Assembly: GCA_004431415.1 (NCBI GenBank)
Contig: QPMI01000401.1
Span: 248,001 to 312,000, forward strand
DNA length: 64,000 nt
DNA from: Cyanophora paradoxa CCMP329
Taxonomy: Eukaryota; Plantae; Glaucophyta
Direction of reading: 5' to 3'
The stretch's first letter is position 1. Every line of letters begins with the position of its first letter. The notes beneath the pieces are model-generated. The model worked only from the letters and a program-made list of their open reading frames with translations, ran no database searches and was not told where the DNA came from. The position numbers and the translations under genes are program-made. This document shows positions 1-59,454 of this stretch, piece by piece.

Positions 1-1091
1 CGCAGACGGACACGCGTACGGGTCGTAATCGCACCTGGTCGAGGAGACGGCCAGTGCGATCGTCTGCGCCAGCCGCCGAAACCTTGAAGCTATTGAAATC
101 ATCATTTTTTTGCGACGCATGCAGGGGCCGAATTCGAAGGCGCACTCGTACGGGTGCAGGCGAGAAGGGACCGCCGCCTCAAGCCCCAGCGTCACACCCA
201 CTGGCGATCGCGAAGGTCTCTGCCCGAAAAGAACAAGTCGAAGAAGATTGATATATATGCACCGCAGTCTCCAGTGGCGCAGAGGGCGTTGCGCTCTTCT
301 TCGGAGATCACGCGCCCCGCCTGCGCGTGGTGCACCGCAGCCAGCGCCCACAGCTGCCGGGCACGGGTCGCGAAGCCGATTTAGTGCCATGCAAATATTA
401 CTGGTGCGATTAAATATTGGTTCCTGGACGGGCGCACCGAGCCAAACGCGACGCACGGGTAGAACGCACACGAGCCGGCCTGGAGACCCTGCACGATCTC
501 CTGCACGCGCGCCTGGGAGCAACCCCGCGAGAGCAGCGCGGCGCCGACGTCGGCCACGACGCGGGCCTCCGCGGGCCGCGTCTCGTGCTCCAGCGCCAAG
601 TCCACGAGCTCCTGCGCGTACGGGAGCTCCTCCCTGCGACACGAGAGTGAGCGAGGGGCGGCAATGGCAGTATCTCGCATTTGATCGCACCGGCCGGCGC
701 CGGCGCCGCGGTACCCGCGATCGTGCCCGGGGCTCCCGTGAGAATCCGAAAGCTTTCCCTCGCTGAGATGAACGACGAAGGCGCGGTCTGCATGCAGAAG
801 ATCGCGGAGAGCGGCGGCCACGTCGGCGAGCTTGCACCTGCGCATGCGATTAAATATTCGCAATCCGTTACGCATATTATATTCTAGCCCCTGAAGCGCA
901 CACAGGAGAGCTCTGAAGAGAGCAACAGCGAGCGCGCACCGCTGCGTGGGGCCGCGGCCGATGCCGCATTCCGGTCGCCCGCTCGAGATCCCCGCTCCGC
1001 CGCAGCTGCAGCACCCGGGACCGCCGAGGCCCAGGGCGCTCGCGGAGCGCTGCAGGGCCTCGCGCGCGAGTGCCTCGTCGCAAATGCGCAT
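1..1091 (-). CDS. 5' part (first GAF domain) of a tandem paralog of the multi-GAF hybrid histidine kinase; gene continues off the left edge
   Basis: Close nucleotide and peptide copy of ~9550-10580 with the same intron positions (MRICDEALAREALQRSAS..PTQR|CKLADVAAALRDLLHADRAFVVHLSE..RREELPYAQELVDLALEHETRP..GRLLDQ). Start codon chosen by analogy. Confidence 0.75.
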
Positions 1092-1604
1092 CGTGGGGAC
1101 GCGGCGAGGCTCGAGATGCAAGTCTGCGAACTCGTTTCGTGTCTGTACCCCTCTCTAAGTTCGAGGCTTCGATCAAGCTTCGCAAAGTGAACTCGAGGAC
1201 TGAACTCGAGAAGAAGAGCTAGGAACAGTCATCAAAAATCACTCCTCGAGCTGAACTTGATTCTTGAGCAAGAGCTCGAGAGAAGAGAAGAGGCTCGAGA
1301 GAAGGGCCAGGGTGAGGAGGATGGCGAGGAAGGCGTCCAAAGTGTTTTCAAACAGCACATGTGCATACTGTGAGGGCTGTACATGTCCAAAACGAGAGAC
1401 GAAACACCTCGCGATAAGCAAGTCAAAGCTAATCGAAGAGGCTAACGTTTTCAAAAGCTCGAGAAAGACCGAATTCTCGAAACGAATCAGCTATACAATT
1501 ACAGCGAATGCGCAAATACGAATGAGAGGCTGACGAGCGAGCTGGCAAAATATTGCGATCGGCGAAAGCGATGTGAAACTGTTGCGAAGACAGACGAGTT
1601 TGTA

Positions 1605-4600
1605 CTAGACCTCTCGACCACCCCAGCGGCTTTCGGGGTGCGGGCAGCTACCCGGCGTAGGGATTGGCAGCGCAGCCGCGGCCGAAGGGTCCGCGGACTC
1701 CTCCAGCCGAAGCCCCGCGCTCCCCGACTCTGCCCCGCCGGCGGGGCGGCCGGCCGCACGGCGGGAAGCGACGGCCTCCTCGGCGGCCTTCAGCGCCTCG
1801 CTCAGCTCCTTCGTCCGCACGGGCTTCTGCGCGCGCCGCGGGCGTCTCAAGCGCCGCGGGCTTCTCAAGGGCGAGGGCGGGGCGGGGCGGACGGCGAGGA
1901 AGGCGTCGTAGCCGGCCTCGGCGCACTCCTGCCGGTCGTGGGCGCCCACGTTGGCGGAGAGGGCCACCGCGTACGGCACGCGGCCCGCCGGCAGCTCCGC
2001 CCGCATCCGCCGCAGCGACTCCAGCCCGTCCATCTCCGGCACTGCCGCCCCCCGTCGGGCGCCTCCCGGGGCCGGGGCGCCGGCCGCGCACTCATGATGT
2101 CCGAGAGGAGGACGTCGAAGGGGCGGCCGGCCGCGGCGGCCGCCTTGGCCGCCTGCAGCGCCCGCGCGCCGTCCTCCGCGTGCTCCACGTCGCTGTAGCC
2201 GAGCTTCCGCAGCAGCACCGTCACGATCTTCGCGTTCGTCTGCGCGGGGGTGGGCCCCAAGCGCGTCGGCTGGCTGAGCGAGGGGCAGAAGAGGGGCGGC
2301 GGCACCGGCGTGTCCTCGGAGAAGAGGATGCGGATCGGCCGCTTGGGGTCGCCCTCGGCCGGGGGCACGGGGCGCGGGGCGGCCGCGGGCTCCGACGCGG
2401 GCTCCAGCCGCTGCTCCAGCTGCGAAAGCGGAGATCATTCTAAGAAGCTCATTCTAAGACCCATCGGCCGAGGGTAAGAAACCAAACTGGAGTTCGAACC
2501 GACGCACTTCCGGGGACAGGGTTGTGAGCAAGTCGTGGCTGCGGATCGGCTCCGTCTGCGTCGGCTGCGGCGGCTGCGGCGCCTCGGCGGGTGGTCCCTC
2601 TGTCCGCGCACTGCACACCCAATGAGAGAGCATGCAAAAAGAAAAAATGTCGAGGTATCAATCATAATAACATCTATTAAACGAGATCAAGAACCGAGCA
2701 GCAGACCGAATACTCTCTGTGAGGCTTTTGTAGAGCATCCGCTCGGACACGGGGAGGCGGAGAGAGATAACATTTTCCCGCACGAATGCTGCAGGTTGAC
2801 GAAGGAAAAGGTCAGACCACAAGAAGCTTTGAGAACAGGATTTGATGGCAAGTTTTCCCTAAATGTGTTAATTTGCGTTTTTGATGGACGAGAAGCCCTG
2901 ATCTACGCATTATCAATGCGGACCTTTCTCTATGCGGACGCCAATGCGGAGGAGGATGAGGGGCGGCGGGGCGCGATCCGCGGCGCCCCGCGCCCGCTGC
3001 AGTTCCTCCAGCAGCCCATCCACCTGCACCCGGGCGGCCGCGGGCGTCGGCGGCGCGGGCGCGGGCGGCGACGGGGGGCGGGGCGGGCCACGGCGGGGAG
3101 CTTGGCGGGGGGGACGAGGGAGGGCATGAAGAAGACGGCCCCCGCGAGCTGCGCGCCCCGCCCCTCCGCCGCCTCCCGCCGCACCGCCCCCAGCGTCCCC
3201 TCCACCGTCCGCTCCTGCCGGAGCGACCATGACATGGCGCGGGCACGAGAAGCAGCGGGCAAAGAACGGCAGGCACCAGGCAGACGCGGACGCCCCACGA
3301 GGCAGCGTCGACTGCAATGGTCCCCTCCCACGCCAGATCGTCGACGCCGACAACCAGCGTCTTTCCCTTGAGCAGCGGATCTTCCTGCACACGCAACGGA
3401 CCCGACTTCAGCGAAGGCTTCAGATCGCCTTGTATGGCTCGCGATCGCGTGCCTTCGGGGGGCAGAGGGCCTGCAGCGTGGGGAGGGCGCGGTCGCCCTG
3501 GGGCACCACGGAGGCCCGGAACGTGAACGCGAAGGTGGACCTGAGCAGAGAGACTGCGTGAGCCCAGCGGGCGGCAATTGCAAGGACGCGGCTGCTGCAG
3601 CTGTCGAAGCGCACCCCGAGCCGACGGTCGAGACGAAGTCGATGCTGCCCTCGAGCGCGAGGGCGATGTGCTTCGAGATGAAGAGCCCGAGGCCCGTCCC
3701 TGCCGGCGCGCCGTTGGCATTGATCTGATCATGAGCCGCGGGCGGCAGCCGCTGAAGCGGACCCTGGTGGCGGCGGCTCTTGGAGGAGTCGAGCTGCGTG
3801 AAGAAGCGGAAGAGCTTCGCCTGGCTCGCCTCCGGGATCCCGCAGCCCGTGTCTGCCGTGGGCGGTGAGAGGAAACATTTACTTCAACAAAGATGGACAA
3901 GGTGGCGGTGCAGGGCGCGCCCGTGACCAAGATGCGGAAGAGGTACTTGCCGTCGGGCCCTGCCGCTCCATAGTATTCAGGGAACAGCGAAGGGAAGCAA
4001 GACGCGGCAGCGACATGGCGCGGACCGGGGCAGCCTTCGGCCTCGAGTTCGACGATGATGCGCCCGTCCGTGGAGAACTTCGCCGAGTCTGACGGGATGC
4101 AGTGAGAGGATGAGGAGTAAGAGTCTTTTACTTGCCAGCGATGACATGTGCCTTGACTTGCCAGGCAAGCGCAAAGCGCGCAAATAAAATTGAATGTTGG
4201 GCATATGGTCAAATCAACGCACTGCCCACGAGGTTGACAATGACCTACGCGACGGGCTAGAAGTCAGCGACCACGGTGATATCGATTTCGTAAATGTGAC
4301 AAGCGTTCAAATGCGAACCTGCCGAATTCGGCCCTTGTCGCAGAAAATGAACCGCGGTACCCCAACTCCCATCTGCGATTAGTCATCCAGTTAGATCAAT
4401 TGCAACTGCCGATTCGCTCTTCCGGCGTATGAGAGCTGACTCTGATTTGCAGAGCGACGTTCTTTTGAGCAGCCACCTGAGAACCGAAGCGAATTCAAAG
4501 TTAGCGATACACAACGCGCCGGCAGCGGGGCTGTCGCGCCGGCCACATCATGTCCATGACCTGTACATGTATGGTGGACTTGTCAAATCACCGGAAATGT

Positions 4601-7600
4601 GAGAGAGCAGGAGGCACCTCCTCGGCGGTGGAGCGCAGGTCCATGGGGTCGGCGGCGACGCGGAGCGACCCGCCGCGCTCGAGGATGCTCGCGTCGAGGA
4701 CCTCGCTCACCAGATCCACCAGCCTGCGCGGTACCGGTGAATCGGCGGTGGCCATGGGAAGCCAAGAAGACATGCATATGACATAGGAATGCAAATGCAA
4801 AAAGGGAAGCCCAGAGAAAATGCAAGTAATTATAATGCAAGCAGCGCACGCTTGGGCGGAGGAACGGATGACGGAGAGGTACTCTCGCTGTTCTACAGTT
4901 TGATTCATGTCCAGCAGCAGATCCGTGATGCCCAGAACCTGGGGATCCGAGCTGACTGATGAGCAGAATATATTTTAATGAACGACATGGGGGATAGCTC
5001 GCTCACCGCTTGCATGGGCGTCCTCATTTCATGCGCTGACGAGCCATCCATCAGCAAGCATTCCGCTCTCGAATTATATATGATCGCAGCAGTGCAAACG
5101 GAGGCATTCCGCTTATAAATTGAGATCAATGAAAGGTTACAAATGCGCACTGATGACGGAGAGGAAGTCACTCTTGGCGCGCGCCGCCTGCTGCGCCTGC
5201 GTCACCAGCGACGCCTGCGCCAGCGCGATGCCCAACACCTGCGAAACATAAAACCACGTTTCAGGTCGCGCTATCTATTTAATGCTAGCGATTCATGCTG
5301 CAGATAGACTATGCTAGCGTTGTGCGATTTATCTATTCAATGCTAGCGTTGTTCTATCTATTTATAAAATTAATGATAGCGATAGATTAGCGCTAGCTCA
5401 TGCGCACCTCGCAGACGTCCTCGAAGAGGGCAAGGTCAGCAGGCCCCAGTGTGCGATTCGGCTCGCCCCAAGTCAACTAGGGAAGGACGAGGGTCAAAAA
5501 AGATCATAGTGTGTCTTTCGCGTGCAGACGCACCCCGACAACGCCGTTGACGAGGCCGCACGAGGTGGTGGCGCGCGCCACGGCAGTACGGCATCCCGAT
5601 TCCCGAAGGAGCTGCACGGTGGCTGCGTCCACGAGTCCGTCCGGGCCCGGCGTCTCCCCGGCCCACTCCTGCGCCCGATGCAAGTCGGCCGCCTGGATCG
5701 TGGTGAGCCCCTTTGTCGCGATGATGGCCTGGAGCATCCGAAACATCAGCGTCAGCGTCGACATCGGAATCGACGTTAACAGACCTCCAGCCGACGTTGC
5801 AGGGTGGCGGAAGACGTAGTGCGTCCCGAGGCCGCATCGATGAGGGAGTCCGGCTTTTCGCGTGCCTCTGCGTCCTTCGCGTACACAGCATCTGAAATAC
5901 GGAACCGCTGAGGGGGACTCTCGGATCCCCGCGGTTCAGGCTCCCACTCAACACAGTATATATGTACGCTTAGCGTGCCGAGAACATCGCACAACATCCG
6001 GGCAGCGGTGTCCATAATTCTGCCGCAGAGTTAACAAAACCTGGGACAAGGGGCTGGCTTCACGTTTTCACGCACGTGCGGGGATCCAGCGTGTCCCGTA
6101 TCTGGTTTGTAATCCTGCGGAGCAGTTGTGCGCGGGCGAGCTGCGCGGTTGACGGCGATTAGTGTTGGGAAAAATTAAAATCAGCGAAGGAAGGCATATG
6201 CATGCCTGTTGCTCGCGGCTGCGAATCTCATCCTCGAGCGCCTGCAGCGAAACAATCAGATGGGTCGAACGGGACTGAGACATTAGACGAGAATAAAGTC
6301 GAACAGGAAGTGCACCTGTACGATACAATCCTGGCCAGTGGCGTCTGCGATTTGCTCGCAAACAGCCTGAACGGAGAGCAGCTTTAATGAAGAGCAGGCC
6401 TGAGTGGCGAAGATATCTACAATCTCACGTCGAATAATGTAAGCGTGTGCTGCCATGGTGCCTGCTTAATTTCCCAACCGATCATGACGATTCCAGTGGG
6501 CTGCAGGCCCAGCACGATTAGAGCCAGCGAGGCGAAATGTTGTACGAGGGACACGCGCCGTTCCACCCCACTTCGTGCCGCGCGCTAGTCCTGAGAGGAA
6601 GCCCATGTCTCGCATCCACTGGCGCAACGCTTCGAACTCCGGCTGCGCGTGCCTTTTCAACGAGAACCAGCGCCCAAGAGAACAAGAGACCAAGAAGGGA
6701 GCGAGCGCGCGCACGTCGTTCTCATTCTTGGCCGGCCCGCCCTCGTCGAATTCAGAGTAACGAAGAAAATCAGAGAACACGTGGACTTGCCCAGCTTCCG
6801 CACGCAGCCGCTGCCAGTTAACGATGAAAAGGCTTTCAGCAGGTAGGAAACGGCCAAATGAAAGACCCACCTCAAAGCGGTAGAGAACGGCGGGCGGGGT
6901 GCTAGCTACTTGGCCGTCCTCCAGGACCTTTGCCGAAGGTGATCCTTTCTTGGCAAAGACCTGCTCATGCGTGCGTGCGCGGCCACACGCTCAAACCCAT
7001 CGAATCGCACTTGAAAAGCTGCGTATACGTAGAGCACCTGCATCGGCGGCTCGCGTGCGATATCCTCGACAAGCACCGCAGTCGCCTTGAAGAGGGTTCG
7101 GATGCCGCCGACGGCCTCCACCATGACCTCCGGCAACGGACGGTTCCTAGGGGGTATGAAGGAGCATGGCGGCCGGGGCGCGGGGCGGGGTTTCAAGTTC
7201 TCGGCTCACGTCCTCATTCCTTTGGCGATGTGGCGGAGCAGCGCCTCGCTCTGCAGCCGCCGCTCGAGCACGCGGAGCAGGTTGTCCTGACCGATCTGTG
7301 CGGCCACCATACGCATCTTAAGAGCTCTCGAATTGAAAAAGTACAGCGAGAGCACGCGAAACAACTGCCCGATCTGGTCGCAGACCGCCTAATGGCCGTG
7401 AAAGGCCGGTGTCGGCATTAGCGGCATGTGACAAAGCTCTGCTTAGCCAAGCGAACCTCAAAAAGAGCACGCTCGTGCGCGGTCGGAGCGTGCTCGTCCG
7501 ACCAGAAGACCGAAACGACGCCCGTCATCTGCGGGAGCTCGATTAAGCCACAGAAGACGTGAATTTCGCACTCGTGATCGGACCTCGCCTCCCCACTCGG

Positions 7601-10551
7601 TGCCGCGGAAGAATCCCGAGGCGGCACCCACGGCGGCGAGCGCTGCTTTCAGCTCCTCCACATCACCCTGGGAATTTTCAAGCGAAGAATGGTCAAGGAC
7701 GCGCAGCAGCGGACGGGATTAGGGCCTTCGCTCGTTTCGGCCTGCGAAACATTGCAAGTTGTCGCCCAGTCGCAGACGTAGACAGTCCGCATCTGGCCGC
7801 GGCCTCCAGTTTCGAAGAGGCGCTGCAAAGAATACGGCTCAAATTAAACTTGAAGTGACTCCTGGGGAATGAGCAGACACGAAGCGAGAACCTGAATGTG
7901 ATGGCGAAGGTCGGCAATGTGTTCGGGCACGACGGCGCCCTCGAGTTGCGCTGGCGGTGAGCCATGCTTCGCGGTCACCTAGGAGTTAAACGGATGAGGT
8001 CGAGTTCAATCGACGAGGTCACATGGTCCTAGTTTGAGAATTGCGTGCCGTGAAGTCTCGAAAGATAGGCGAGACGGATCGGGATGCTTTGTCGACGTCG
8101 ACGATTCCGCCAGCGCCTCCGCCGCCTCCGGATCCACCGCCGCCAGCTCCCTCCGGGCCCCGCAGGCAGTGGACAACCACCATGCTGGCGTCGAACAGCT
8201 CCCGAATCCGATCAACCGTCTGGCACAGAACTTCGCGCATACTCAGCTTCCTGCACGCGTACGCCCGTGAAATCCCTTTCGGCTCTTGGTAAGGATCAAG
8301 TCAAAGCACCTGCAGATGCCGCAGGCGATGTCGCGCAAGAGAGCCTCGCTTCGCAGGCGGCGCTCCAGCACTGCCGTCTGCTGTGCGTGCTGCTGGCCGC
8401 TGAGCGGGCAATCCTTTCACGCTTAGGACAGCGTCGCGTACCTCAGCGGCGAGCTGCCTGTTCCTGGATGCGAGATCGCGCTGCAGTTTGTCCTGCTCGA
8501 CCTGCGAGGCCGCGGGACTCAGCTGCATGAGCGGATCTGGTTATAAGCGGACTGCGCACCGCGCGTCCGGCTTGGTTGCACAGCAGGTCGAAGTGCGATC
8601 GATCCGCCTCTGATGCGACCCGTCCGTCCGCCCAGCCGATCGTCACCAGGCCCATCGTCTACAGGCGCGATGAACGGCGGAGGCGAGGCGGGGCGGGGCG
8701 GCTGGGCAGACCTCGTTGCCCCAATCTGAGACGCGTGAGAGGGCCGAGCGATACCCCATCTGCGAGAGGGCGGCGAGCTCGACCACCTTCTCCTCCTGCG
8801 GCTCTGACGTGAGCCGCGGAGCTGATGCGCCCGCTGGGGCGCGAACTTCGTCTGCTCCATCCAATGGCCCGCCCTCGTCCAGGGGCAGCCGCTGCCGCCA
8901 GTCCGCGAAGAAGAAGACGCGACCGAGTTCCGCGGCCATGCGCTTCCGAGCGATCAGCAAGCAGCGGCTTGAGCACGTGGGAGGCTCGTACATCATGCCG
9001 ATGGCGAATAGCCGGCAAGCAGTCCGGTACCAGCTTCTGGGCAGCGCGCCCAGCTCCCTTTCTCACCGAAACCTGCAGAGTTCGGGGGACGGTGTGAACA
9101 AAAGTGGTCAAGAACAAGATTCCAACAAGCGCACAAGCAGCTCAGGGAGATCCTCCAGCTCTGTTGCTTCGCGGGGGACAGAAGGGTCCACGGCGTCGAC
9201 GCCGCACCTTCTCAGGGTGCGGATTTCGAGGAAGTCCCTGGGCTCAACAATCAGGCGAGGCCGGCGCCGCAGGCGTTTCGAGGGGAAAACGGACGCGTCA
9301 AAAATTCCTTGCAGCCCTATCAGCGCTTTGTGAACCGTGTCCTCAAGACTGCGCTTTCTGCGAGGCGTTCAAATATGGCGACGAAGAAGGTTGGGCAGGC
9401 CAGCTTACTCGTGCAGGCCCCTTGCGATGTCATCAAACAGCTCTTCGCTGCGCTTTCGGCGGTCCAGGTCTCCGGAAGCTTCTTGGAGCTGCGGGGCGGA
9501 GATTATGACGTAAGGAAAATGCATCACCCTGCCTAGCCCGACACGGATGGCACACCTGGTCGAGGAGACGGCCGATGTGCTGCTCTTCTCCAGCTGCAAA
9601 TACCTTGGAGCTGTTGTTCAATGTGAGCGAAAAATACAGCGGTCACAGGGCCCAATCGCGAGGACGCACGGATGCAGGCAAGAAGACACCGCTGCCTCGA
9701 GCGCCAGGCTGCTGGCAACTGCCAATTGCAAGAATTCAGTGCCAGAGAAGAGAGTAGATCTAGATCTAAACTAGTACTATTGCGTTTGCACCGCAGTCCC
9801 CGGTGGCGGAGAGCGCGTTGCGCTCTTCTTCGGAGAGCACGCGGCCCGTCTGCGCGTAGTGCACCGCAGCCAGCGCCCACAGCTGGCGCGCGCGGCTCGC
9901 GACTCAGTATCGATATCGAGGGTTGCTCTCATCGATCTATTCTGGGAGGGGCGCACCGAGCCGAGCGCGACGCACGGGTAGAACGCACACGAGCCGGCCT
10001 GGAGATCCTGCACGATCTCCTGCGCGCGCGCTTGGGAACAACCGCGCGAGAGCAGCGCGGAGCCGACGTCCGCCACGACGCGGGCCTCCGCGGGTCGCGT
10101 CTCGTGCTCCAGCGCCATGTCCACGAGCTCCTGCGCGTACGGGAGCCCCTCCCTGCGACACGAGAGTGAGCGAAGGGCGGCAATGGCAGCATCTCGCATT
10201 TGATCGCACCCGCGCTCGTGTCCGGGGCTCCCTTGAGATTCCGAAAGCTTTCTCTCGCTGAGATGAACGACGAAGGCACGGTCTGCATGTAGGAGATCGC
10301 GGAGAACGGCGGCCACGTCAGTGAGCTTGCACCTGCGATTTGAAAACCGTCACGCCGCGCGCCCGAAGCGCGAGCAGGAGAGCTCTGAAGAGAGCAAGAG
10401 CGAGCGCGCACCGCTGCGTGGGGCCGATGCCGCTTTCCGATCGCTCGCTCGAGCTCCCCGCTCTGCTGCAGCATCCGGGACCGCCGAGGCCGAGAACGCT
10501 CGCGGAGCGCTGCAGGGCCTCGCGCACGAGTGCCTCGTCGCAAATGCGCAT
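1605..10551 (-). CDS. Multi-exon soluble hybrid sensor histidine kinase: 5x GAF - HisKA - HATPase_c - degenerate receiver-like region - REC
   Basis: Spliced H-box AKSDFLSVITHEMRTPMQAVLGITDLLL (5240-4900); LVSEVLDASILERG; N-box VIVNLVGNSAKFS; G boxes DTGCGIP..KLFRFFTQLDSS..GTGLGLFISK; REC IRILFSED..FDVLLSDIMMPEMDG..ALSAN..FLAKPV. GAF entry helices (LRDLLHADRAFVVHL; VLCQTVDRIRELFDASMVVVH; VMVEAVGGIRTLFKATAVLV; LLRRITNQIRDTLD) and exits (GRLLDQ; FDLLCNQ; AVCDQIG; AVCEQIA; LFEDVCEVLGIALAQA). Continuity of all GAF exons in one transcript is inferred. Confidence 0.8.
5271..5397. repeat. AT-rich intronic minisatellite (TATCTATT-N-AATGCTAGCG-like units) in the kinase gene
   Basis: 3-4 degenerate copies of TATCTATT / ATGCTAGCG within one intron. 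Confidence 0.6.
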
Positions 10552-10865
10552 CGTGAGGCGCAGCGAGGCTCGAGATGCAAGTCTTTCTCTTCGCGGCGGT
10601 ACCCGTCTAGATCTGCGTCGCTCAAGTTCGCGGCTCAACTTCGCGGCTCAAGTAGCGCGATTGCGAGGCGAGCTCGCGTGAGGACCGACAGCGAGGCGCC
10701 GACAGCTCGAGGAGCGTCCTAGGCCTGCGGGGCGCCCAGCGTGGGCTTCGAATCCGCCGCGTGTGATGCGCCGGGAACTTGAGCTTCTATAGTTATTCAG
10801 CGTCACGAGAGGAAGGCAGCAGCAGCAGCGACCGCACATCGATGCGTGTGCGCGACTCGCTGCGC

Positions 10866-12208
10866 ATGCAGCTGCCGACGCTGTTGGTGGCGCTCCTCGC
10901 GTTGGTGGCCTGTAGCCGCACAAATATACACGCATCATCGCTAGACGTCGACTTGAACGGCTTCGACGCGATCGCAGCGCAGCGGCGGACGCTGTCCTTT
11001 GAGGAGCTTGAAACCCGTGAGCTACTGGCGTCTGCGCGCGCGTGCGCCGCGTAATTCGCGCTTCTTCAATAGCTGATCATGGGAGCGCGCTCGCCAGGCC
11101 TGGCGCCGGGGCGCGGTGCGGTGCTGGGCGAGGTGCTGAACGAGCTCGGGCTGGTGGGCGTCGGCGCCGAGGTCGGCGTCCAGCGCGCCCTTCACGCGGA
11201 GGACATCATGCTCTGTGCGCATGCGCACGCGCCTGAACTTCCGCCCTGTCGCCGCCTCCCGCTCCAGGCCTAGGCCTCTATATAGCTATATCTACAGCTA
11301 GCGTTCGCGCGCGCGCAGCTTGGGGCGGGAGACGACTGGTCTTGATCGACGCGTGGCACAGCGCGCACGAGACGGCGTACGAGGACACCGCGGACGTCCC
11401 TCTCCCCGACCACGTGCGCGCGAATCGAATCTTCGCTCTCCAGCTTCAGTTCGAGCCCGGACCGCGCGGGGCAGGAGGCGAACATGGCCCAGGCGCAGAG
11501 GCGAATGGCGCCCTTCGCGCCTCGCGTCGAATTCCTCCGCGAGTGGTCACTCGTGCGCTCTGACTTGCCTTGCCGAGTCCCCCGACAGCGGGCGCTGCGG
11601 GGCGCCATCCCTTCATCCGTTCCGGCCTTATATGCAGCCCGCAGAAAGCAGCGAGCAAGTACCCGGACAGCCACTTCGACTTCATCTACCTGGGTACGAT
11701 GTACCCTCGCCCACCTACCCCCCCCCCCCCCCCCCAGCCCCTCCCCCCTCCCAGCCCGGCGGCCGCGCCGCGTATCCCTGAACGTCTCTGGTGTACCCCC
11801 CGCAGACGCCCGGCATGACTACGAAGGGATACGGGACGACATCGTCGCCTGGTACCCCAAGCTGCGCAGCGGCGGGTGAGCGCGTAATCCTCATGATCAA
11901 AACTCTCCTCCCGGCAAACTTCAATCATTTCATGACACATACCTCCCCCCCGCGCCGCCCCCCCTTTCGCCCTTCTTCCGGCAGGATTCTGGCCGGCCAC
12001 GATTGGCTTGACGGCCACTTCATGGGGACCCAGTACGGGGTACGCTAGCTCGTAATTCGCATCGTACCCCCTTACCAGCCCCACGGCTGACCGGCTCCCG
12101 GTGTCGCAGGTCCGGAGGGCGGTGGGCGAGTTCGCGGCCCGCGAGGGGAAGCGGGTGGGGTGCATGGAGTGCCACAGTGACTGGCCCTCCTGGTTCCTCT
12201 TGAAGTGA
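10866..12208 (+). CDS. Class I SAM-dependent methyltransferase (Methyltransf_24-like) with N-terminal signal/anchor
   Basis: MQLPTLLVALLALVAC; GAEVGVQRA (motif I), LIDAW, FDFIYLDARHDYEGIRDDIVAWYPKLRSGGILAGHDW..YGVRRAV; ends WPSWFLLK*. Confidence 0.85.
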
Positions 12209-12445
12209 AGCCCAGAGATGAGCCTGCAGATTCTTGTGCTAATTAAATACAATCTAGTTACTTACGATTCAGCGAATTTCGCGGCAGTCGAACGAAGCCC
12301 TGATGTCCAGACCGCTAAGATTGATATAATACCACACTGGATGTAGAAAGAAACAAGCGGGAAAGAAACAACAGCAGCAGAGAGAAAGGAGCGAGCTTGA
12401 AGAGCACAAGAAGTCGGGGCGCGGGCGGGAGCTTGGGCGGCCTCC

Positions 12446-15400
12446 TCACGAGTCCTCGGCGTCGCTGCCAGGGCCGTACCCCCCGACGCCGTCCTCCCCG
12501 TCCTCCTCGGGCTCGGGGTCGTCCTCCCCTAGCGTTCTCACCTGAGCAGAGCCCGTGAGCTGATTGACGGCTCAAGCCCGAGCCGAGGGGCGCGGGCGGG
12601 GACCTGGATCGCGGCGGGGGCGCAGCCGGCCTCGGCCCCCCTGCGCAGGCGCGGGCCGCGGAGTGAGATGGGGCGAGCGGGGAGGGGGAGAGTGAGGCGC
12701 GGGCGCGCCGGTAGGGCGTGAGGCGGAAGACGTAGTCGCGGTCGGGCTTGAGGCCGGCGGCGCGGTGCCGCGCCCCGGCCCCCTCGTGCAGCGTCCGGTA
12801 CCCCGCCGCCTCCCGCACCTGCCGGAGGAGAAGCTCAGGCGAGACGGACCGCCCGGGGCGTGCGCGGGGCCGGGGCGGGCGGGCCTGGAGGCGGTAGGAG
12901 AGGCCCGGGAGGGGGGCCCACTCGAGGAGGGCCCAGTCGCGCCCCGCCCGCACCGCCCGCAGCTCAGTCCGCGGCAGGTCCTGCGACACCCGAGTCAGGG
13001 CCTCGATCCGAACCGAGCACATGCGAGCGGCGCGCGCGCTCTCAGATCGATGTCGAGCCGGCGCGGCCAGGGCGGGCCTCTTCGGGGCCTTACGGGCGGG
13101 GCGGGGCGGGGCGGGGCGGCGCACGGACTCCGGGGTGTCCGTGAGTAGCTCCACGACGTCGCCCAGGGGCCCGTCCCCGTCGTGGCCCCCGAAGCACACC
13201 ACCCGCCCTGCCGACCCTCGGAAGTCAGAGGGAGGGTGGGAGGGAGGGGGGCAGTCTGGGCGGCGGGCGGGCGGGCGCACCGCCGGGGAAGGCCCCGCCG
13301 GCGTGGGCGTGCCGGGGCCGCACCGCCCCGTGCGAGGCGCGCGGGCGCACGTGCGTCCAGACCCCCGAGCTCGTGTCCAGGACCGCCACCTGCGCGCAAG
13401 GAGACGAAGAAGAGGTCTCAAAGGCGCTGGAAAGCGGCGCGGGCGGGCTGTGCGGGCGGGCGGGGCGTGGGCCTCGCCTGGTCGCTGGGGCGGCCCTCGA
13501 CGAGCCCCCCGAAGAGCCTGCCGGCCCGTCAGCGCCGGCGCGCGATTCGGGGAAGCGGGGCGGGGCGGCGACGAGCTGCTCTATGCGCGCGCCTGTAGGG
13601 TATCTAGTGCCTGTCCCTAGGCCACGCTGATCTCTATTACGTGCGATCCGGCCGCGGTGCGCACCAGAAGCGGGAGCCGAGGAGGCAGCCGACGGGCGAG
13701 GAGACGCAGGGGGGCAGCTCCCCGCAGCCGAGCCCCTCCGTCCACTCCCCCGTCTGCGTGTCGAACTGCAGCCGCCGGTGAGAACGAGCAGGAAGCGGGG
13801 GGGGGGGGGGGGGGGGGGGGGGGGGCTAGGTAATGCTGGGTACTCTGGCGCACGATGTTGATTGTGTTGACGGGGTGCGCGGGCGCCCGTCCTCCAAACA
13901 CGAACATGCGCGCTGGGGGTACAGTCAGTTCCGCAAGGGGTACAGAATACCGGGCGGGACGGGTACCATTGATGACGAACGCGACGTGGCCGGAGACCGG
14001 CCGCGGGATCGCGCCGAACGCGTTGAGGAGCTGCGGGGGTACGGGATCGAACGGGGGGGGAGGCGAGGAAGTGGGGGTACGCGCGCCTGCCACGTGGAGT
14101 GCGTCAGGTCGAGCATCCAGACGCAGTTGGTCTCCTGGTTCTCCGCGAAGCCTCCGAAGACGAAGCTGGGGGCGCGCGCGCGGCGGTCAAGGGGGTACGC
14201 ACGTATGTCGGTCACGAGGGGGGGGGGGGGGGGGGGGAGCGGGCGCACAGCTTGCGGCCGTTGACGGCGACCGTGTGGCCGTAGGTTGGCGGGGGCGCGC
14301 TCGTCCCCTTGACGTTGACCGCCGTCCACACCAGGCTCGTCTGCTCGCGGACCGCTCGGTCGAGGTCGCAGGCGAGGGGTCCAGGGGGGTACGGCGCACC
14401 GTGTTCAGGCGGAACACGTCGTTCCTGGGGCCCTTGGCGTCGTACCCCCCGACCACGTAAATGTCCTTGTTCACCGCCACGGCCGCGTGCTTGTGCCTGT
14501 ACCCCTCGGGTCAGACCGAATGGGGTGGGTGGGGGGGAAGCAAGGGGCGTACCGGGGCGTCGGAGCGGACCCGCAGGTGCTCGCCAGCGCCCACAGACGA
14601 GTCTCGACGTCGAAAGTCCAGACCTGCGGGGGTACGTTATTCGCGGCGCGAAGGAAGGACAGGACACAGAGCGCGCCTCGTTCGTGAGCCCCGCGCCGTG
14701 CACCCAGCCGCCGATGACGATCAGCTACGCGGGGGTACACGTGTCATTCAGAGGGGCGAGGAAGAGGGGTAGGCGCCCGCACCCTGTGTTCGATCGCGAC
14801 GGCGGTGTGGCCAAAACGGGGGGCGGGGACCTCGGGGGGTAGGGTGGGGAGGCCGGCGGGGGGCAGGCCGCGGTCCGGGGAGCGGAAGAGGGCGGAGGCG
14901 GCGCCGGGCCCGGCCGGCAGCGGCGCGCCGACGTTCAGCGGCGCCAGCGGTTTCAGCACCTGCGGAGGAAAGGGGGGGGGAAGGGGGGGAGGGAGGGGGG
15001 AAGAGGAAGATTAGAGCGCGTGGATGCAGCGGGTACGTGAAGGGTTGCTCGCCTTCGGCGCCACGTCGACGACGGACGCGGACGAGACGAACGATTCGTA
15101 CTTGCCCTCCTGGGAGGGGGTGAGAAGGGTACGACGGCCGGAGGGGGGGGGGGGTAGCGGACCCTCAAGGAGCCGCCGAAGAACCAGAGCTCGCTGGCTA
15201 TGGCGGTGCAGGTCTGGCCGGCGTGCGGGAAGGGCGGCAGGCCCACGAAGCTCTCCTCGCTCCTGCTCGACCCAAGTCAGATCAGCTCAGATCAGCTCAG
15301 AGCAGATCGGATCAAGGACCAGAGGGATGTGTCCGGGGAGAGGACGTAGGCGCGTTTGAGGACCGAGCCGACCTCGAGGGCCCACAGGCTGCCGCCCCGT

Positions 15401-16884
15401 GAGGCCGGCGCCGCTCGCGGGCGGGAGCGCGGCGCCGCGGCGGGCTCCAGGGCAGACGACCGCGCACCTCCGCTTCACGACGGCGCACTTGTACCTGAGT
15501 GCAGCGCCGATTCGTCAGGAGACCGGCAAGGGGCGGGCAACGGGGGTACAGGGGGTACCGGTTCGCGGGCCGGGGGCAGTCCCCGAAGCACGGCTGCGAC
15601 TTCCACGTGTCCGTGAGCGTGTCCAGGATGTAAACCTGGGGGTACGCAATCAAGTCAGCGACACCCGGGGTACGCCGCGGAGCGCGGCGCGTATGGCGCA
15701 CGGTCTCCCAGTCGTAGCCGCCCTTGTCGTCGTGCCCTGCAGGCCGGGGGCGGGGGACCGTCGGCGCGGGGGTAGCGAGCAGGGAGGGAGGGGGGTACAG
15801 GGCACCGAAGACCCAGATCGAGGAGCCGACGCGCATGCAGACGCTCCACGCGAGCGCCGGCGGGCGTGTACCCGTCGCGACCACCTCCTTCCATTCCTGC
15901 CGGGCCGTGAGGCGTCCCGGCGTCCCGGAGGGGGCAAGGAGGGGAAAAGGGGGGGTACGCGGACCTTCGTGTCAAGGTCCAGCGCCCACACGTCCATGAG
16001 GTGCTCGGTACCCGTCTGGGCGAGGCGCCGGCCGCCGATGGCGAAGAGCTGCGAGGGGGCGGCGGGGCCGGGCGTGAGAGGGCGCGGGGGCGGGAAGGGG
16101 GCGGGGGGAGAGGGCGGCGCGCGCACGCGGCTGCCGACGACGACGACGGAGTGGCCGCAGCGGGCGGGGAGCTTTCCGGTACACTCCACCGGCCACCACG
16201 TCTGCGAGTTCACGTCCAGCTCCCTGCACGCCGGCCGCGCGACTCAGACGCTGCACGCATCCCGCACGCGAGGCGCGGCGGCGGGGCGGACCAGACGTCG
16301 TTCCGAGTGTACCCGTCCCACCCGCCGACGACGACGACCTACACGCGGCGTGAGCGGCGGGCGCGGCTGGCGGGCGGGGCGGGCGGGCCTTCGTCCCGAC
16401 GAGGGTCGCGGAATGGTAGCCGCGGGCGCTCGGCGCCGGTCCCGGCGTCACTTGGACCTTGATCCATTGCTTTGTGTTCGTTTTGAGCTTGCTGTGTGAG
16501 GAAGGGGGCGGTCGGCGCGAGGGCGGGAGGCGGCGCCGGGCGAAGCGCCGGGCGCCAGGTGGACGCACTACACGTCCGCCGTGAGAGTCCCGGAGCCCTG
16601 CCCGATCTGCGCCGGCGAGATCTAGCGCCCGCACTCGCGCTGCCGCGCTGGCGCCGCCGCGCACCTGCCCTCCGATTATCAAAATCGACGCGTCGGGTAG
16701 CGCGGTGGCCGAGTGCTGCATTCGAAGCGTAAGGAATGGCGGCAGCGGCGTGTCGGGCGCTGCGGCGCAGCGGCGCTTCGGCAGGAGTGGTCTTCACGCA
16801 CATGAGCCCGGCCGCTTGGAAGCTCCCCCGAGCAGACGGTCGCTCCTGGTGGGTGGAATGAGCCGCAACGAAACGCACAGGCAT
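12446..16884 (-). CDS. Kelch-repeat protein (probably two beta-propellers) with C-terminal fibronectin type III domain and acidic tail
   Basis: Repeated kelch blades (HSATALPDASILIIGG; ARGYHSATLVG; ARCGHSVVVVG..LFAIGG; PRFGHTAVA; IYVVGGYD; PVSGHVAFV..MFVFGG; VCFGGHDG); FN3 ALLEWAP..YRL..GLKPDRDYVFRL. Start uncertain (16884 or 16803). Confidence 0.85.
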
Positions 16885-32036: not shown

Positions 32037-35000
32037 CTACTTGTGATAAGAGTCCCTAAGTGTGCAGATCCGGTTGAAGACAAGGTTGCCAGGCTTCGAG
32101 TCAGGGTCCACAACGAAGTAGCCCTGGCGCTCAAACTGGAACCGCTCGGCCTCACGGGCTCCTGCAAAAAGATAAGCTTTGCAAGAGAATCTAGGAAAGT
32201 ACAGCTCACCTGCAAGGAATGGGTCGAGATAGGCACGAGTGACAACGAGCGAGTTGGGGTTCAGCGCTGTCAACCAGTTCGGATGGCTGGCAGGGTCCTC
32301 AACAGAGAACAGGGTGTCGTACAGCCGGACCTCAGCCTTAGCAGGTGCCTGGAAAACAGTGAGCTGAACAGCAAATAGAGACAGCACACAGGTGTTCACC
32401 TGGCCGGGTGCAGACTCTGAAACCCAGTGCAGGACACCTTTGGGCTTGCGTGCCTTCGAGAAGTCTGCCTCGCAGAGCAGCTCCACAACTTCGCCAGTTG
32501 CACTCTTCTTCACATCCTTGCAGGTGATATTGATTGCATAACGGAGCATGACCTCCTTGTTTGGTGCGAGGCCAAAATAGTCCTGGGTCGCAAGTCAGGA
32601 CGAAGCAAATCTGACCAATGTTTTAAAAGGACAAACCTTTGAGTCCTCGAGCCGGAAATCAGTTTGCTCGATGTAGACAGTTCCCGTCATTGCGACAGTG
32701 TGGGTGCCACGCTCGGGGTACTTGGGGTGGTTTGCGATCTGGATTTGCTCAACCTGCATCCCAATTGAGAAAGAGAACAGACAGAAATGTGGACTAAAGA
32801 GATCCGGACCTTGCCCTGGGGCCAGTTGGTAATAGTGACCTTCAATGGCGCCAGAACGGCCATAGCGCGGCTGCACTGCTCATCACACTCATCCCGAACA
32901 ACCCCCTCAAGCGTCTGAGTGTCTGTTAGAAATTGCAGGCAACGCAGGATCTGCATAGCGATGCACACCCTGTAAGAGATGAACTGATCGCTGCGAGAAA
33001 CGCCGACCATGTCACAGAACTTGTTTAGCGCAGATGCAGTGTAGCCCCTCCTCCGAAGTCCCTTGATCGTCAGGAGCCGAGGGTCATCCCAGCCTGTCAC
33101 GTGCTTCTCGTTCACGAGCTGGAGCAGCTTGCGCTTCGAAACAACATTGTGTGAAAGGTTCAGCCGGTTGTACTCCCACACGTGTGGCCTGTAAAGGTCC
33201 AGCGCTTCAAGCAACCAGTAGTATGTGTCACGACGAATCTGCATTCGTTGCACTTAGAGAAGAAAGCTCCCACGGAAAGAGCAAGGGCGGACCTCAAACT
33301 CGAGTGTGCACAGCGAGTGTGTGATGTTCTCCAGCGAGTCCACAAGGCAATGTGTGTAGTCATAGGAAGGATAGATGCACCACTTGTCACCAGAGTGAGG
33401 GTGTGGGCAGAGCTTCACACGGTACGCCACCAGATCACGCATGCCTGCAGCGCGGATGAGAGAGAGAAGACGTGACACGACACCAAGCATTGGATGCGCA
33501 CAGGGGTTGGGGTGAGTCATGTCGCCCTTCATGCGGAGGGTGACCTGCCCCTCGCCGAACTTGCCCTTGCGCATATCCTCGAAAAGCTTGAGGTTCTCCT
33601 CGACAGAGCGATCGCGCCACGGGCTGTTCATCTTTTTATCTGCAAGAGGACTTCAGACCAGAAAGTACCCAAGCAGAAGAGAGCGGACCGCGATAGGAGG
33701 ACATCTCCTCGGGCGTCTGGTGGTCAACGTAGGCCTTGCCGCGCTTGATGAGCTCGACGGCCAGGTCGTAGAGTTCTCCGAAGTAGTCAGACGAGTACGT
33801 GACCTTGGCCGGCTTCCAGCCCATCCAGTGCACGTCCTGTGCGAGCTCGCCATGAGGCCAGCGCCAATCTCTTGCACTGCGCGGCATGCACCTCGAGAAT
33901 GCTCTCGATGTACTCCTTCTTCTCCGCCTCGGGGTTGGTATCGTCGAAGCGCATGATGCAGTCACCACCGGCCTCAGCCGCGTACCCGAAGTCCACCCAC
34001 ATCGCCTTGGCGTGGCCAAGGTGGAGGTGGCCCTGCAAAAAAAGTGGAGGGTAAGAAGAAAGAGGAAGAAGCCTCGGATCAGGCCCAGCGCACATTCGGC
34101 TCGGGCGGGAAGCGGGAAACCACGCGGCCGCCCGTCGCCTTCCGGTGCTTCTCGAGCAGCTCCGGCGTGTTCTTCGCCGCATCGAGCTCGCGGGCGGCAA
34201 AATCCCACTTCTCCTTCTTCGGCGCCGGCGCCGCCTCCTTCTCAGCAGTAGGCGCCGCCTCCTTCTTCTCGGCGGGCTTCTTTTTCACCTGCGAACGCGC
34301 AGTCGGCGCCGAGCGAAGCACGCGAGCGCGCCGTAGCAGGATACCTTCGGCTTCTCTGCCAGATCATCCTCCGTCTTGGGCCCGAGCAGGGCAGCGACCT
34401 GGGCGTCAATCTCGTTCTTCACGGCGCCTCCCTCCGCCCACTTGAGCCGCTCGTTCGCGCCCTTCAGCAGCAGACCGACAGGGAACCTGTAGCGGTCCTC
34501 TAGGAGCTTTTCTTTGTTTGCTTCGATGACCGCCTTGACAGCCGAAGCAATTTGGTCGGGCGTGATGACAACACCTGCCGCTTGCTTGAGCGCGACCGTG
34601 CGCGCGGGCCACGGCACAAGAGCACGGCATCGCCAGGAAGCGCAATGAGCACGCACCGACGCCGGTGCTAGCCTCGAAGCTTGCGATGTCGAGGTCCGCG
34701 TTGCCAGTCGCCTTCAGGAACTCGATCGCGGCATCGAACTGGGGCGATATGCGGATCTTGCCAGTCGCAATGTACTGCGCAAGTGTGCGCCGGTGTCGGA
34801 TTGCAGGCGCCGGGCACTTGGTGGAGAGCGCGTAGAGCAGCACGCCAGCCGCCTTGTCGCAGCCGCCGGAGACGCCGGCCTGCGCGCTCCGTAAGTCGGC
34901 GCCAACCGCCAGAGCGCTGCACAGCACCCGCACCTCGTCGATGACAGCCAGGAGCGCGGCGGTAACCTTCTCGTTCGCCGAGACCTGCTTGGCGGTCTTC

Positions 35001-35047
35001 TCGTCGAGCCCGATCCGCACGAAGGCGGCCGCAGCTGCTTCAGCCAT
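32037..35047 (-). CDS. QARS: Glutaminyl-tRNA synthetase, eukaryotic type with N-terminal extension domain
   Basis: [17 protein letters not shown]; RFDDTNPE; [30 protein letters not shown]; [24 protein letters not shown]; FQFERQGYF; N-terminal [12 protein letters not shown]. Confidence 0.97.
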
Positions 35048-35240
35048 AGCCGGCGCTTTGGAGTACCAAGCTAGGCCACTGGCGAGAGAGCTGCGGAGCC
35101 CGGGTACAGGTCCCGGCGACCGGAGGCGCCCTTGGGCCAGGCTAGACCACCAGCACCAGCGCTTCAGTATCGCCGCTCGGCACCTTCTAGTGTGTGCGCT
35201 AGCGAAGGTCGGCAGCGGCCGACATCGCCGCGGTTGGAAT

Positions 35241-36403
35241 ATGCGGCCAACGCGCGTCGTCGGCGCCGGGCGTAGCACGTCGACGTTGGCGGCCGTACTC
35301 GCCGGCGTTCTCCTCGTTTGCCTGTTTGCAAGCGCCTTCGCGGCCTCCTGTGTGGTGAGCAAGACGCTGCGACTCGCGCGCCGGCCGCGCGCACGACACA
35401 CGATACACGAGCTGTCTACTGCATGCGACAACATTTAGACTGCGACCTCATATTGCGCTGCCAAATTGCGCATAGCTTCGCGAGGCACCCCGCCGGCGCG
35501 ACGCCATCTGACCGGATCGGCGGGACGCATGCGCAGACACGAGGCGATGAACCCGTTGATCTTGCTCAGCTAAACGCGAAGGATCCCGCGTACTACAAGT
35601 CGGGCACAGCCGACAGCGGGCTCGAAGTCTTCTTTCAGGTTCGCGTGGCTTCGCGCGGGGGCCGCCTGTGACAGTACTGCGTTATAACTAGCTCTCATGA
35701 TCAACGTGCGCGCTCGGCAGATCTGTGGCGCCTCGGTAGATGCGACCGTGAACCCGGAAATGGCAAGCTGCGGAACTGCGACGTCCCTCGGCTTTGCTGT
35801 CGTCAAGAACGCGTCGGACGGGAGCTGGGACTGCACTGCCCTGGGCGCCGCCGATCCCGAGGTTGTCGCATTGACGACTGGGGATGCGCCAGGCTATGTC
35901 GTACAGACGAAAGACCTCTGGTATTTTTATCTCGATTTTAACCAGTTGGCATCTGTCACACTGACTGGATTGAATTTCGCAGGGTTAAGGTCCTTTGCGA
36001 CGATCAGGCGGATTCGGTTCAGATCGCAGGAGACCCTGTATACGCGGAAGACACTGGTCTCTTCACTGTCGCCGTGTCCTCGAAAGCTGTTTGTGTCACT
36101 CCATCCTCCGGGCACAGCAGTGTGCTCTTCATCTTCTTCGTGTTCTTCCTGCTGGCATTGGGCGTGTACTGCGGCGTGGGGATAGCCTGGAAGCGCAGAA
36201 CCCTTGGTGTCTCAGGCATTGAGGTGAGCTTCTGTTTTGACTTGCCATGATCAAACTCGCCACAAATTTTTTGTTCATGATTATTTGTGCAGGCGATCCC
36301 CAATGTCGAGTTCTGGCGATCAATCCCTGCATACATGAACGCTCTCTGGCATGCAACGCTTGCCAGGTTCAGAAATCAATCTGAGTACACACCTCTAGCT
36401 TAG
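35241..36403 (+). CDS. Cation-dependent mannose-6-phosphate receptor / ATG27-like type I membrane protein
   Basis: Signal peptide; Cys-containing MRH-like luminal region; TM FIFFVFFLLALGVYCGVGIAW; GIEAIPNVEFWRSIP; C-terminal YTPL sorting motif. Confidence 0.8.
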
Positions 36404-57077: not shown

Positions 57078-58863
57078 ATGGCCGCCGGCGCCAGCGACGA
57101 GGGACTTTTGAAGGCCTGGGCGGGCGCTGTCGAGGAGAGGGTCCTGGAAGGCCACTCGGACTGGGTCCACTGCGTTTGTTTCTCCACGGTGCGTACTCGG
57201 CCCTGCGATCGGCCGTGTTCCCGCCTGGCCGGCTTGGATTTTGCTGTCAAGTGTTGATTACGCGGCCTCGGCTGTCAACTACAGATCAGTTAAAGTTTAA
57301 ACAAGATGATTGATCGGCCGCCGATCGCAGGACGGCAAGATCGCGGTCAGCGGCTCGCACGACGGCTCGATTCGTGCCTGGAATGCCGTGGAGCGCCACG
57401 CTGACGACCCGCTTCGGATCTGGGCTAACGTACACGAGGTCAGGACTAGTGCGCCGGCCGCGGCTGCGGCCGCGGCGCCGACCCTCGAGTGACTGTGACG
57501 CGGGCCCGGGGACAACAGGGCCTGCACGTGAACGCGGTGCTGGCGAGCGCGGCGGGGCAGCTGGTCAGCGGGGGCGGGGACCGGCAGGTGCGGGTGCACG
57601 ACCTGGCAACCGGCGCGGCGCTGCTGCAGCTCGCCGGCCACGAGGACGCCGTCGAGAGCCTCGCCGTCTCCCCCGTGCGCCCCGATCGGGATCGATTGGG
57701 CCGGTCGGGGTCGATATCGACCGGGCGTGGCAGGACGGGGGCGTCGTGGCCTCGGGGTCGGCGGACTGCACGATCAAGCTCTGGGACGCGCGCAGCGGCC
57801 GCGAGCTCCGCACCCTCAAGAAGCTCGGCGGCGCCGTCTCCTCCCTCACCTTCTCCCCGGTGCCCGGCCCCGGCACCGGCCCCCGGACCCAGCGGAACGC
57901 TGCCCTCGGCCCTGACGCCCGCGGCCGCCCCAGCACGGCTCGTCCCTCCTCTCGGGCTGCGAGGACGGCCTCGTCCGCGTCTTCAACATGCGGTGCCACC
58001 AGCCCCGCCCCGCCCCGCCCCGCCGCCTGGATTCGAACCCGGGCCCCGCAGGAGCGCCAAGCAGATCCTCGAGATCGACGGGCACGCCGAGGATTCGATC
58101 CGCGCCATCTCCCTCTCCCCGGTACCCCGCGCGCCCTCCGGCGGCCCCGCGCCCCGGCCGGACGAACGCTCGCCCACGCGATTTCGCGTACCCTTGCCGC
58201 AGGAGGGCGCCCTGATCGCCTCCGGGGGCCACTGCAGCTCCGCGCACGACGCGATCCGCCTCCACGACGGCAAGGTGCCGTACCCCCCGGCCCCTTCTCC
58301 CCCCCCTGACGGGACCACCCAAACCTCCTCCGCTACGGGCAGACGGGGGCCTCGGTGCTGCGGCTCCGCGGCCACATCGGCGACGTCTCCTCTCTCGCCT
58401 TCGCCCACGTGCGACGCGCCGCCCTCGCCCGCCCCTTTCGCTTCCGGCGCCCTCACCGGGGCGGCAGAGCGGGGCGTTCCTGGCGTCGGGGGGCGCCCTG
58501 GACCAGAGCGTCCGCGTCTGGGACTACCGCACGGGGGCCAAGGTCCGAGCCGGCGCCCCGCGCGCTCCGGGTCGCGCCGACGTCCGACGCGGCGCCGGCG
58601 CAGGTGGCGCAGCTGGTCGGGCACACGGGCCACGTCAACTGCGTCGCAGTCTCCCACGTCGGCCCCCCCCCCCCCCCTCCCCCGCCCCCCGCCCCCGCCC
58701 CCCCGCCCCGCCCCGCCCGGCCCGGTCCGACCGCCGCCGCGCGCAGGACGACCTCGCGATCGCGTCGGGCGGCTCGGACAACGCTCTCCGCCTGTGGCGC
58801 GCCCGCCCCCCGAGCGAGGCCGCCGCCCCGGCCGCCCCCGTTGCCGGCGTCTCGGCCGCCTGA
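57078..58863 (+). CDS. WD40-repeat protein
   Basis: LEGHSDWVHCVCFS..VSGSHDGSIRAWN; LAGHEDAVESLAVSP..ASGSADCTIKLWD; LRGHIGDVSSLAF; LVGHTGHVNCVAVS..ASGGSDNALRLW. Confidence 0.92.
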
Positions 58864-59454
58864 GCTCGGCTCGGCCCGGGCGGCGGCTCGCTGCAACGTC
58901 CGCTGGCTATACTGTTAGGAGGTCTCTGCCGGCCCCACCGCCGGGCTAGATCTAGAGCTCGAGTCGGGCCACCCTGGCTGTACATCGTTTAGATTTTCTG
59001 GGCAGGGGGAAGGGGGGGGGGGGGGGATACTCGGTAGATCGTTTCTACTTTGGGCTTCGGGCTTCGCTTTTAGAGATCTTGCAACCCTTGCTTGATTTGC
59101 TGTTTAGCGTGATCGTGATCTTTCATTGCAGCTTCAGCTGATCTTGAATTTTAATGTCGCGAATTGGAATTCATGATCAGCGGAGGGCACTTTAATCTGT
59201 GCACGTGTTCAACGATTATTTTTGAGTTAGTTCGATTCCTCCGACACGACAATCGCAATTACCGTCGTACGACGCGTGCAAGTGCAATCATGATCATAGG
59301 TTTCAAGAGCCATGACTCCGAGGCTCATGACCATGATCATCGATATCGGATCATGAGATTCATGACTCCGCGGGCCGGTACCGGTCGCCGGTCAGACTCT
59401 GAATATCAAGTCCGCGGCCGGTCCAATGACTCTGATCAAAACTAATTAATTATT

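Follow-up and report, generated by a model that had tools for sequence, protein, structure and literature searches.

A transcribed, intron-rich hybrid histidine kinase gene of Cyanophora paradoxa with five probable cyanobacterial-type GAF domains

Among the described kinases closest to the one reported here, those of the Synechocystis WP_011153597 type join GAF domains to a HisKA-HATPase-REC-REC(-Hpt) chain, and the relatives of this kinase mostly carry two GAF domains and at most four (120 cyanobacterial relatives). On the eukaryotic side, a survey of histidine kinases records one from Cyanophora, a phytochrome named CparaHK1/GPS1 (PMC6324907). The literature searched offered no account of a eukaryotic kinase in which cyanobacterial-type GAF domains are stacked, an absence that weighs little given the limited library covered. 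The locus described here adds to that survey an expressed kinase and its tandem copy, both missing from it. The Cyanophora kinase is a lineage-built multi-GAF hybrid kinase, and we regard it as probably a cytosolic, dimeric hybrid histidine kinase whose sensor consists of five stacked cyanobacterial-type GAF domains, the middle ones having been duplicated within the gene after intron gain.

The gene is a GC-rich, eukaryotic one on the minus strand of the window, i.e., the whole stretch of 64,000 nucleotides that was analysed (Table 1). Three-frame reading and splice-site scans yielded an exon model running from the ATG at 10551 to the stop at 1605-1607, with zero internal stops in 1728 codons and a domain order of five GAF-like units, HisKA, HATPase, pseudo-receiver and intact receiver. 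The 53 modelled introns measure 47-169 nt (median 66 nt); all 53 acceptors are AG, and the donors are GT in 45 cases and GC in 8. Intron size and density are in keeping with the published genome of Cyanophora paradoxa, in which introns average 86 bp and number 9.2 per gene (PMC6704402), and from this agreement we infer the organism. Contigs from two studies, built from four runs that are probably RNA, were compared with positions 4620-10600 and back 19 introns between GAF2 and the kinase: the 15 listed joints agree with modelled introns, three of them having GC donors, three further joints (donors 8846, 7583 and 6870) were read from contig pieces or loose ends, and the joint at the H box was seen in one contig of the paralog. 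The share of GC donors, 8/53 introns (15%), is a feature in itself, the RNA-supported ones being those at 8048, 6558 and 6205. Contigs from two runs also have GC-rich loose ends inside the introns at 7171 and 8678, which may come from unspliced paralog transcripts or from strain differences.

Table 1. Predicted features of the kinase gene and its tandem copy, in coordinates of the window.
Feature	Position	Strand	Basis
Five-GAF hybrid histidine kinase gene, 54 exons, 1728 codons	1605..10551	(-)	Frame continuity and RNA joints
GAF1, exons 1-5	9670..10551	(-)	Profile/alignment; starts at first GAF helix; five introns conserved in paralog
GAF2, exons 7-13	8560..9488	(-)	Homology and introns common to GAF3/GAF4; RNA joints near 8846, 8711, 8559; weak direct GAF-profile signal
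GAF3, exon 15 to start of exon 21	7350..8389	(-)	Exons 15 and 16 on GAF profile, p 0.02 and 0.007; RNA joints
GAF4, end of exon 21 to exon 27	6316..7290	(-)	Exons ordered on GAF profile; RNA joints
GAF5, exons 29-33, adjoining the kinase	5190..6140	(-)	Exons 29, 30, 33 at 23-28 bits, p 0.007; exons 31, 32 in order
HisKA (DHp) domain; phospho-His encoded at 5033-5031 within a 29-nt exon	4618..5190	(-)	Pfam HisKA E 0.0097 on one piece; RNA joints 5006, 4849
HATPase_c with N, G1, F and G2 boxes, exons 37-45	3453..4560	(-)	Pfam HATPase_c E 1.8e-6; introns predicted
Pseudo-receiver, exons 46-49	2707..3384	(-)	Weak, ordered placement on receiver profile; splicing predicted
Intact C-terminal receiver, exons 51-54	1770..2340	(-)	Pfam Response_reg E 0.003
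Tandem paralog, 5' part, exons 1-6 (GAF1), running off the window	1..1125	(-)	ATG at 1091; 78% nucleotide identity over 1.1 kb

The ATG at 10551 is probably the correct start, because the 5' flank differs from that of the paralog by a one-base indel and a gene on the opposite strand apparently begins ~290 nt upstream; the upstream reading frame is not conserved between the two copies. Across the whole modelled protein the best 19-residue hydropathy window reaches 1.62 and falls on the GAF1 beta-hairpin, so no transmembrane segment was found, as the preliminary description had held. A signal or transit peptide was rejected, the protein beginning at the first GAF1 helix without a leader. Two introns stand out. 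The longest (5239-5407, 169 nt) is unusually AT-rich and contains short repeated palindromic words. Modelled intron 2 (10153-10209, minus strand) is 57 nt long, in frame and free of stops, and is 96% identical to its paralog counterpart (634-690, minus strand), above the flanking exons; it may be retained or coding in both genes.

By every sequence test applied, the predicted protein is a hybrid histidine kinase. Its THEMRTP matches the H-box consensus (22 bits) and is followed by an exon with a Pfam HisKA match, and the ATPase domain shows, in order, the N box (VNLVGN, with its Asn on a split codon), G1 (DTGCG), the F box and G2 (GTGLG). The C-terminal receiver keeps ED, the Asp in SDIMMP (2101-2099), the Ser in ALSAN and the Lys in KPV (1826-1824). 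Exons 33-36, 39-41 and 43-45 fall in order on a cyanobacterial hybrid-kinase profile, and the receiver exons are likewise ordered. The claim that the phospho-relay residues (His, N/G boxes, Asp and Lys) are intact therefore stands, and every motif quoted in the preliminary description, as well as the four linkers it placed between the GAF-like units, was recovered in place on the minus strand. Its list of kinase and receiver motifs was sound as far as it went, but it overlooked a pseudo-receiver between the HATPase and the receiver, which, by eye and with predicted splicing, retains DD, with Met in place of the Asp, Arg in place of the Thr and Leu in place of the Lys. The transmitter is a standard HisKA-HATPase-REC-REC hybrid, and the gene, put forward earlier as the best candidate for a new system, is not categorically new. 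Directly after the pseudo-receiver, exon 50 (2508-2610, minus strand) carries EPIRSHDL, a second motif resembling a receiver end, which scores 16.6 bits on the receiver profile; it may be left over from a duplication or belong to an alternative exon. In plasmids and genomes, the kinase and receiver exons find their best matches among mixed bacteria, at 45-59% identity; thus, the kinase core has no specific cyanobacterial signal at exon-level resolution. Word searches with HATPase and GAF4 pieces gave no match.

The five upstream units are very probably GAF domains, an assignment built on sequence profiles and exon order. The reference profile comprised 96 cyanobacterial GAF domains, chosen via one Synechocystis kinase and hence biased. 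Profile A5, built only from the helix2-strand1 exon parts of the gene itself, found the GAF domain of RcaE as its best PDB match (E 2.7e-4 and 3.2e-4); next came 6OAP, 6OZA and 6OZB, which we take to be cyanobacterial GAF structures; profile A1, built from the last-strand exons, had 6OZA/B as its top PDB matches at the matching strand (E 1.1). The entry-helix and helix2-strand groups outscored all 40 column shuffles on the GAF profile, with HH probabilities of 52% and 89%, the latter for the helix2-strand1-2 group against the 96-domain profile. Exons 15-16, 21-22-26-27-28 and 29-33 are placed in order along the GAF domain, several with p values of 0.007-0.02. By eye, GAF1 can be aligned over its whole length, GAF2 was assigned by homology with GAF3 and GAF4, and scaffold similarity occurs in sequence order in GAF1, 3, 4 and 5. 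The A5 match and the ordered exons support the earlier reading of one soluble kinase with five GAF-like units, which are of cyanobacterial type, and its view that PAS and PHY domains are missing agrees with the lack of hits on the Pfam-searched pieces and with the GAF entry helix that opens all five units. Several searches were negative: Pfam/NCBIfam GAF on every single-exon piece, phmmer on 1.84 billion representatives with part of GAF1, plasmid tblastn with exons 4, 33 and 43, and PDB searches with profiles A3, A4 and exon 33. ESM Atlas features gave a best value of 0.78, unnamed. A single-sequence AlphaFold model was all-helical and of low confidence (pLDDT 56), its input piece holding intron-derived and out-of-frame residues, and an alignment-guided model, partly circular and without the last strand and helix, reached pLDDT 68; neither had a significant fold match. 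GAF3 also has a Gly-rich insert (8120-8165, minus strand) after its first strand, in the RNA-supported exon 16.

The protein is best read as a cytosolic ligand or redox sensor. In this scheme, which borrows from two-component biology, the first and last helix of each GAF would line up as one unbroken spine that leads into the DHp domain. A redox change or the binding of a small cytosolic ligand, rather than a covalent bilin, in at least one GAF pocket would shift the autophosphorylation balance at the His; the C-terminal receiver would then accept the phosphate on its Asp and probably hand it to a phosphotransfer protein, the pseudo-receiver acting only as a modulator or docking site. Between the repeats, identity is 61-79% in the linker helices and 19-38% in the pocket exons, as would be expected if signal transmission were kept while the ligand pockets differ. 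The same disparity would also suit a rather unlikely alternative, namely that only one or two GAFs sense (GAF5, perhaps GAF1) and that GAF2-4 are degenerate and serve as a helical spacer or dimerisation scaffold, and so would the Gly-rich insert and the fact that the pocket exons, those of GAF2-4 included, found no match on the 96-domain cyanobacterial GAF profile. However, the exon after the pocket is exactly 28 residues long, with invariant G, S, R, W and G, in all three of GAF2-4, which argues for a maintained fold. Since isolated GAFs are small and expressible, the cytosolic sensing of an early-branching alga becomes directly testable.

The distribution of cysteines raises a narrower version of the redox proposal. 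GAF1 is Cys-rich, with nine Cys of which eight are kept in the paralog, and a Cys in the last helix is common to GAF2-5. A thiol or iron-sulfur sensor that works like the GAF of CSK/Hik2 but in the cytosol would account for these residues, and it has a precedent in CSK, which binds a 3Fe-4S cluster through a GAF Cys without an obvious motif (PMC6949291). The conserved GAF1 cysteines would allow a CSK-like redox role, which we nevertheless hold to be distinctly unlikely: the shared last-helix Cys occupies what is a small buried Ala in the cyanobacterial consensus and so may be structural, and the protein has no transit peptide.

It is quite improbable that the kinase is a eukaryotic cyanobacteriochrome-like photoreceptor that holds bilin through a non-canonical Cys or non-covalently, even though Cyanophora makes phycocyanobilin, the nearest structures are RcaE and GAFs of the 6OAP/6OZA type, and GAF1 fits the Cys-bearing subtype slightly better and carries a Cys positioned four residues ahead of the canonical column. 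The motif at the last strand and helix of cyclic-nucleotide-binding GAFs of the PDE/CyaB type is NKFDE, and in alignment A1 the last strand does not end in Asn-Lys in any of the five units. Under the published definition of the bilin Cys motif (PMC7332365), the canonical column reads R, V, E, A and A in GAF1-5, so that the Cys-His bilin site is absent from all five units, in which no DXCF motif was seen either; similarity to the photoreceptors is, moreover, limited to scaffold helices and strands. The units are therefore neither canonical cyanobacteriochrome GAFs nor PDE-type cyclic-nucleotide GAFs. Bilin and cyclic-nucleotide binding were accordingly set aside as unlikely, these motifs being missing throughout, and judged from its residues the signal is probably not light.

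How the GAF stack arose can be read from its introns. In GAF2, GAF3 and GAF4 four introns coincide exactly in position and phase. One, of phase 2, closes the entry helix and lies 15 residues ahead of a motif common to the three units; the other three, of phase 0, delimit exons of 96/108/96 and 84/84/84 nt. A 72-nt exon is, in addition, common to GAF3 and GAF4. The introns at 9408, 8991, 7891, 7714 and 7209 are predicted, and several other introns of the shared set are RNA-supported. The chance of four coincident introns in two comparisons is roughly 1e-11 or less, and the GAF2-4 exons are homologous (42-46% identity, E about 1e-4 within the window). GAF1 has one of the shared introns, and those of GAF5 are offset. 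From these positions and phases it follows that GAF2-4 were copied after intron gain, inside a eukaryotic nucleus, and were not imported whole; on the modelled exons, they are products of duplication within a eukaryotic gene. The shared introns thus document cleanly how a bacterial-type sensor was enlarged within a eukaryotic gene through duplication of an exon block. GAF5 best fits the non-bilin, kinase-proximal cyanobacterial GAF subtype and GAF1 slightly favours the bilin (Cys-bearing) subtype, in a biased reference set, which suggests, as a lead, an ancestor with two or three GAFs resembling common cyanobacterial kinases. An ancestor with fewer GAFs than today, probably two or three, would then have acquired introns in a eukaryotic nucleus, one exon block would have been duplicated twice to give GAF2-4, and a tandem duplication of the whole gene would have come later. 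The preliminary description had favoured acquisition of an already stacked gene that was filled with introns afterwards. Such transfer of the whole five-GAF kinase from a cyanobacterium would explain the GAF scaffold and the GAF-HisKA-HATPase-REC-REC order shared with a Synechocystis kinase, but it is contradicted by the common intron positions, phases and exon sizes of GAF2-4, and it is made highly improbable also by the mixed bacterial matches of the kinase and receiver exons and by the maximum of four GAFs among the 120 relatives.

The kinase gene is real and transcribed. Individual contigs lead from GAF4 across the linker and into GAF5, and the break at 6.4 kb that the preliminary description named as counting against a single gene is therefore absent; the paralog transcript, recognised by contigs with differing letters, connects the end of GAF5 to HisKA. 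RNA depth is low, about 2-8, no single contig covers the entire gene within 4620-10600, and the GAF1 region (9620-10600) has zero contig coverage in the two studies. The paralog has five GT-AG introns at the same places as the kinase gene, and a comparison of the copies gives a dN/dS of 0.34 in the core of GAF1 (p 0.004) and of 0.45 when exons 1-6 are taken together, which places GAF1 under purifying selection. That the repeats upstream form a gene of their own, or a pseudogene in decay, as the thin RNA depth and the lack of a contig over GAF1 might hint, is very improbable against 1728 stop-free codons, contigs that bridge 6.4 kb, a paralog contig that links GAF5 to HisKA and a dN/dS below 1. 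Identity to the paralog is 85-96% from exon 1 to exon 4 (except intron 3, 70%) and about 70-76% over introns 4-5 and exons 5-6, a drop that suggests either that GAF1 underwent gene conversion recently or that constraint is relaxed in the linker.

Other genes were noted in the window. The head-to-head neighbour (10840-12300, plus strand), about 290 nt from the kinase start, looks by eye like a class I SAM methyltransferase that is either secreted or anchored in a membrane, and one piece of it had no Pfam match; next to it (12300-16720, minus strand) lies what appears by eye to be a protein of kelch repeats whose C-terminal part is fibronectin-like, and Pfam found no match for single pieces of it. 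The N-terminal region of a glutaminyl-tRNA synthetase (34406-35434, minus strand; Pfam E 3e-24) and a WD40 protein (57489-58949, plus strand) lie further along. On a broader view, put forward tentatively and which may well not hold, glaucophytes would have built their own multi-ligand cytosolic sensor kinases by repeatedly duplicating one cyanobacterial-type GAF exon block and diversifying its pockets, each protein integrating several distinct signals, possibly plastid-derived metabolites, redox state or a non-covalently held bilin.

Of the known systems, the cyanobacterial multi-GAF hybrid kinases are those that the Cyanophora kinase would resemble in its working. The chloroplast sensor kinase CSK/Hik2 also joins a cyanobacterial-type GAF to a histidine kinase and has Cys in its GAF region, whereas the Cyanophora protein has no transit peptide, carries five GAFs and has receivers; identity with CSK/Hik2 was rejected on the missing leader before GAF1, the two receivers and the presence of more than a single GAF. 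Plant ethylene receptors of the ETR1 type have the same cytosolic GAF-HisKA-HATPase-REC chain, and the H box of ETR1 is presumably HEMRTP, as here, but the Cyanophora kinase lacks the transmembrane ethylene-binding domain, has five GAFs versus one and an extra pseudo-receiver; an ethylene receptor was rejected on the hydropathy maximum of 1.62 on the GAF hairpin and on the start of the protein at the GAF1 helix. The glaucophyte phytochrome CparaHK1/GPS1 is also a soluble hybrid kinase with a GAF, from the same organism, and differs in its PAS-GAF-PHY module and bilin Cys, both missing here; a phytochrome was rejected on the entry helices of the five units, the absence of PAS/PHY hits on the pieces and the missing bilin Cys. 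Cyanobacteriochromes and knotless phytochromes (RcaE, 7CKV/8K9O; 6OAP; 6OZA/B) have in common with the Cyanophora units the GAF scaffold (helix 2, strand 1, last strand and helix) and a kinase output, in contrast to the Cys-His bilin site and DXCF, which no Cyanophora unit has; a canonical cyanobacteriochrome was rejected on the bilin Cys column. The Synechocystis WP_011153597 type likewise sets a GAF immediately ahead of HisKA, its entry and exit helices being the same, has several GAFs per chain and puts two receivers after the ATPase. Relative to this type, the Cyanophora kinase has no PAS, CBS or Hpt that was seen and its first receiver is degenerate; it is eukaryotic, with 53 introns and five GAFs, the middle ones internally duplicated and their pockets diverged beyond recognition.
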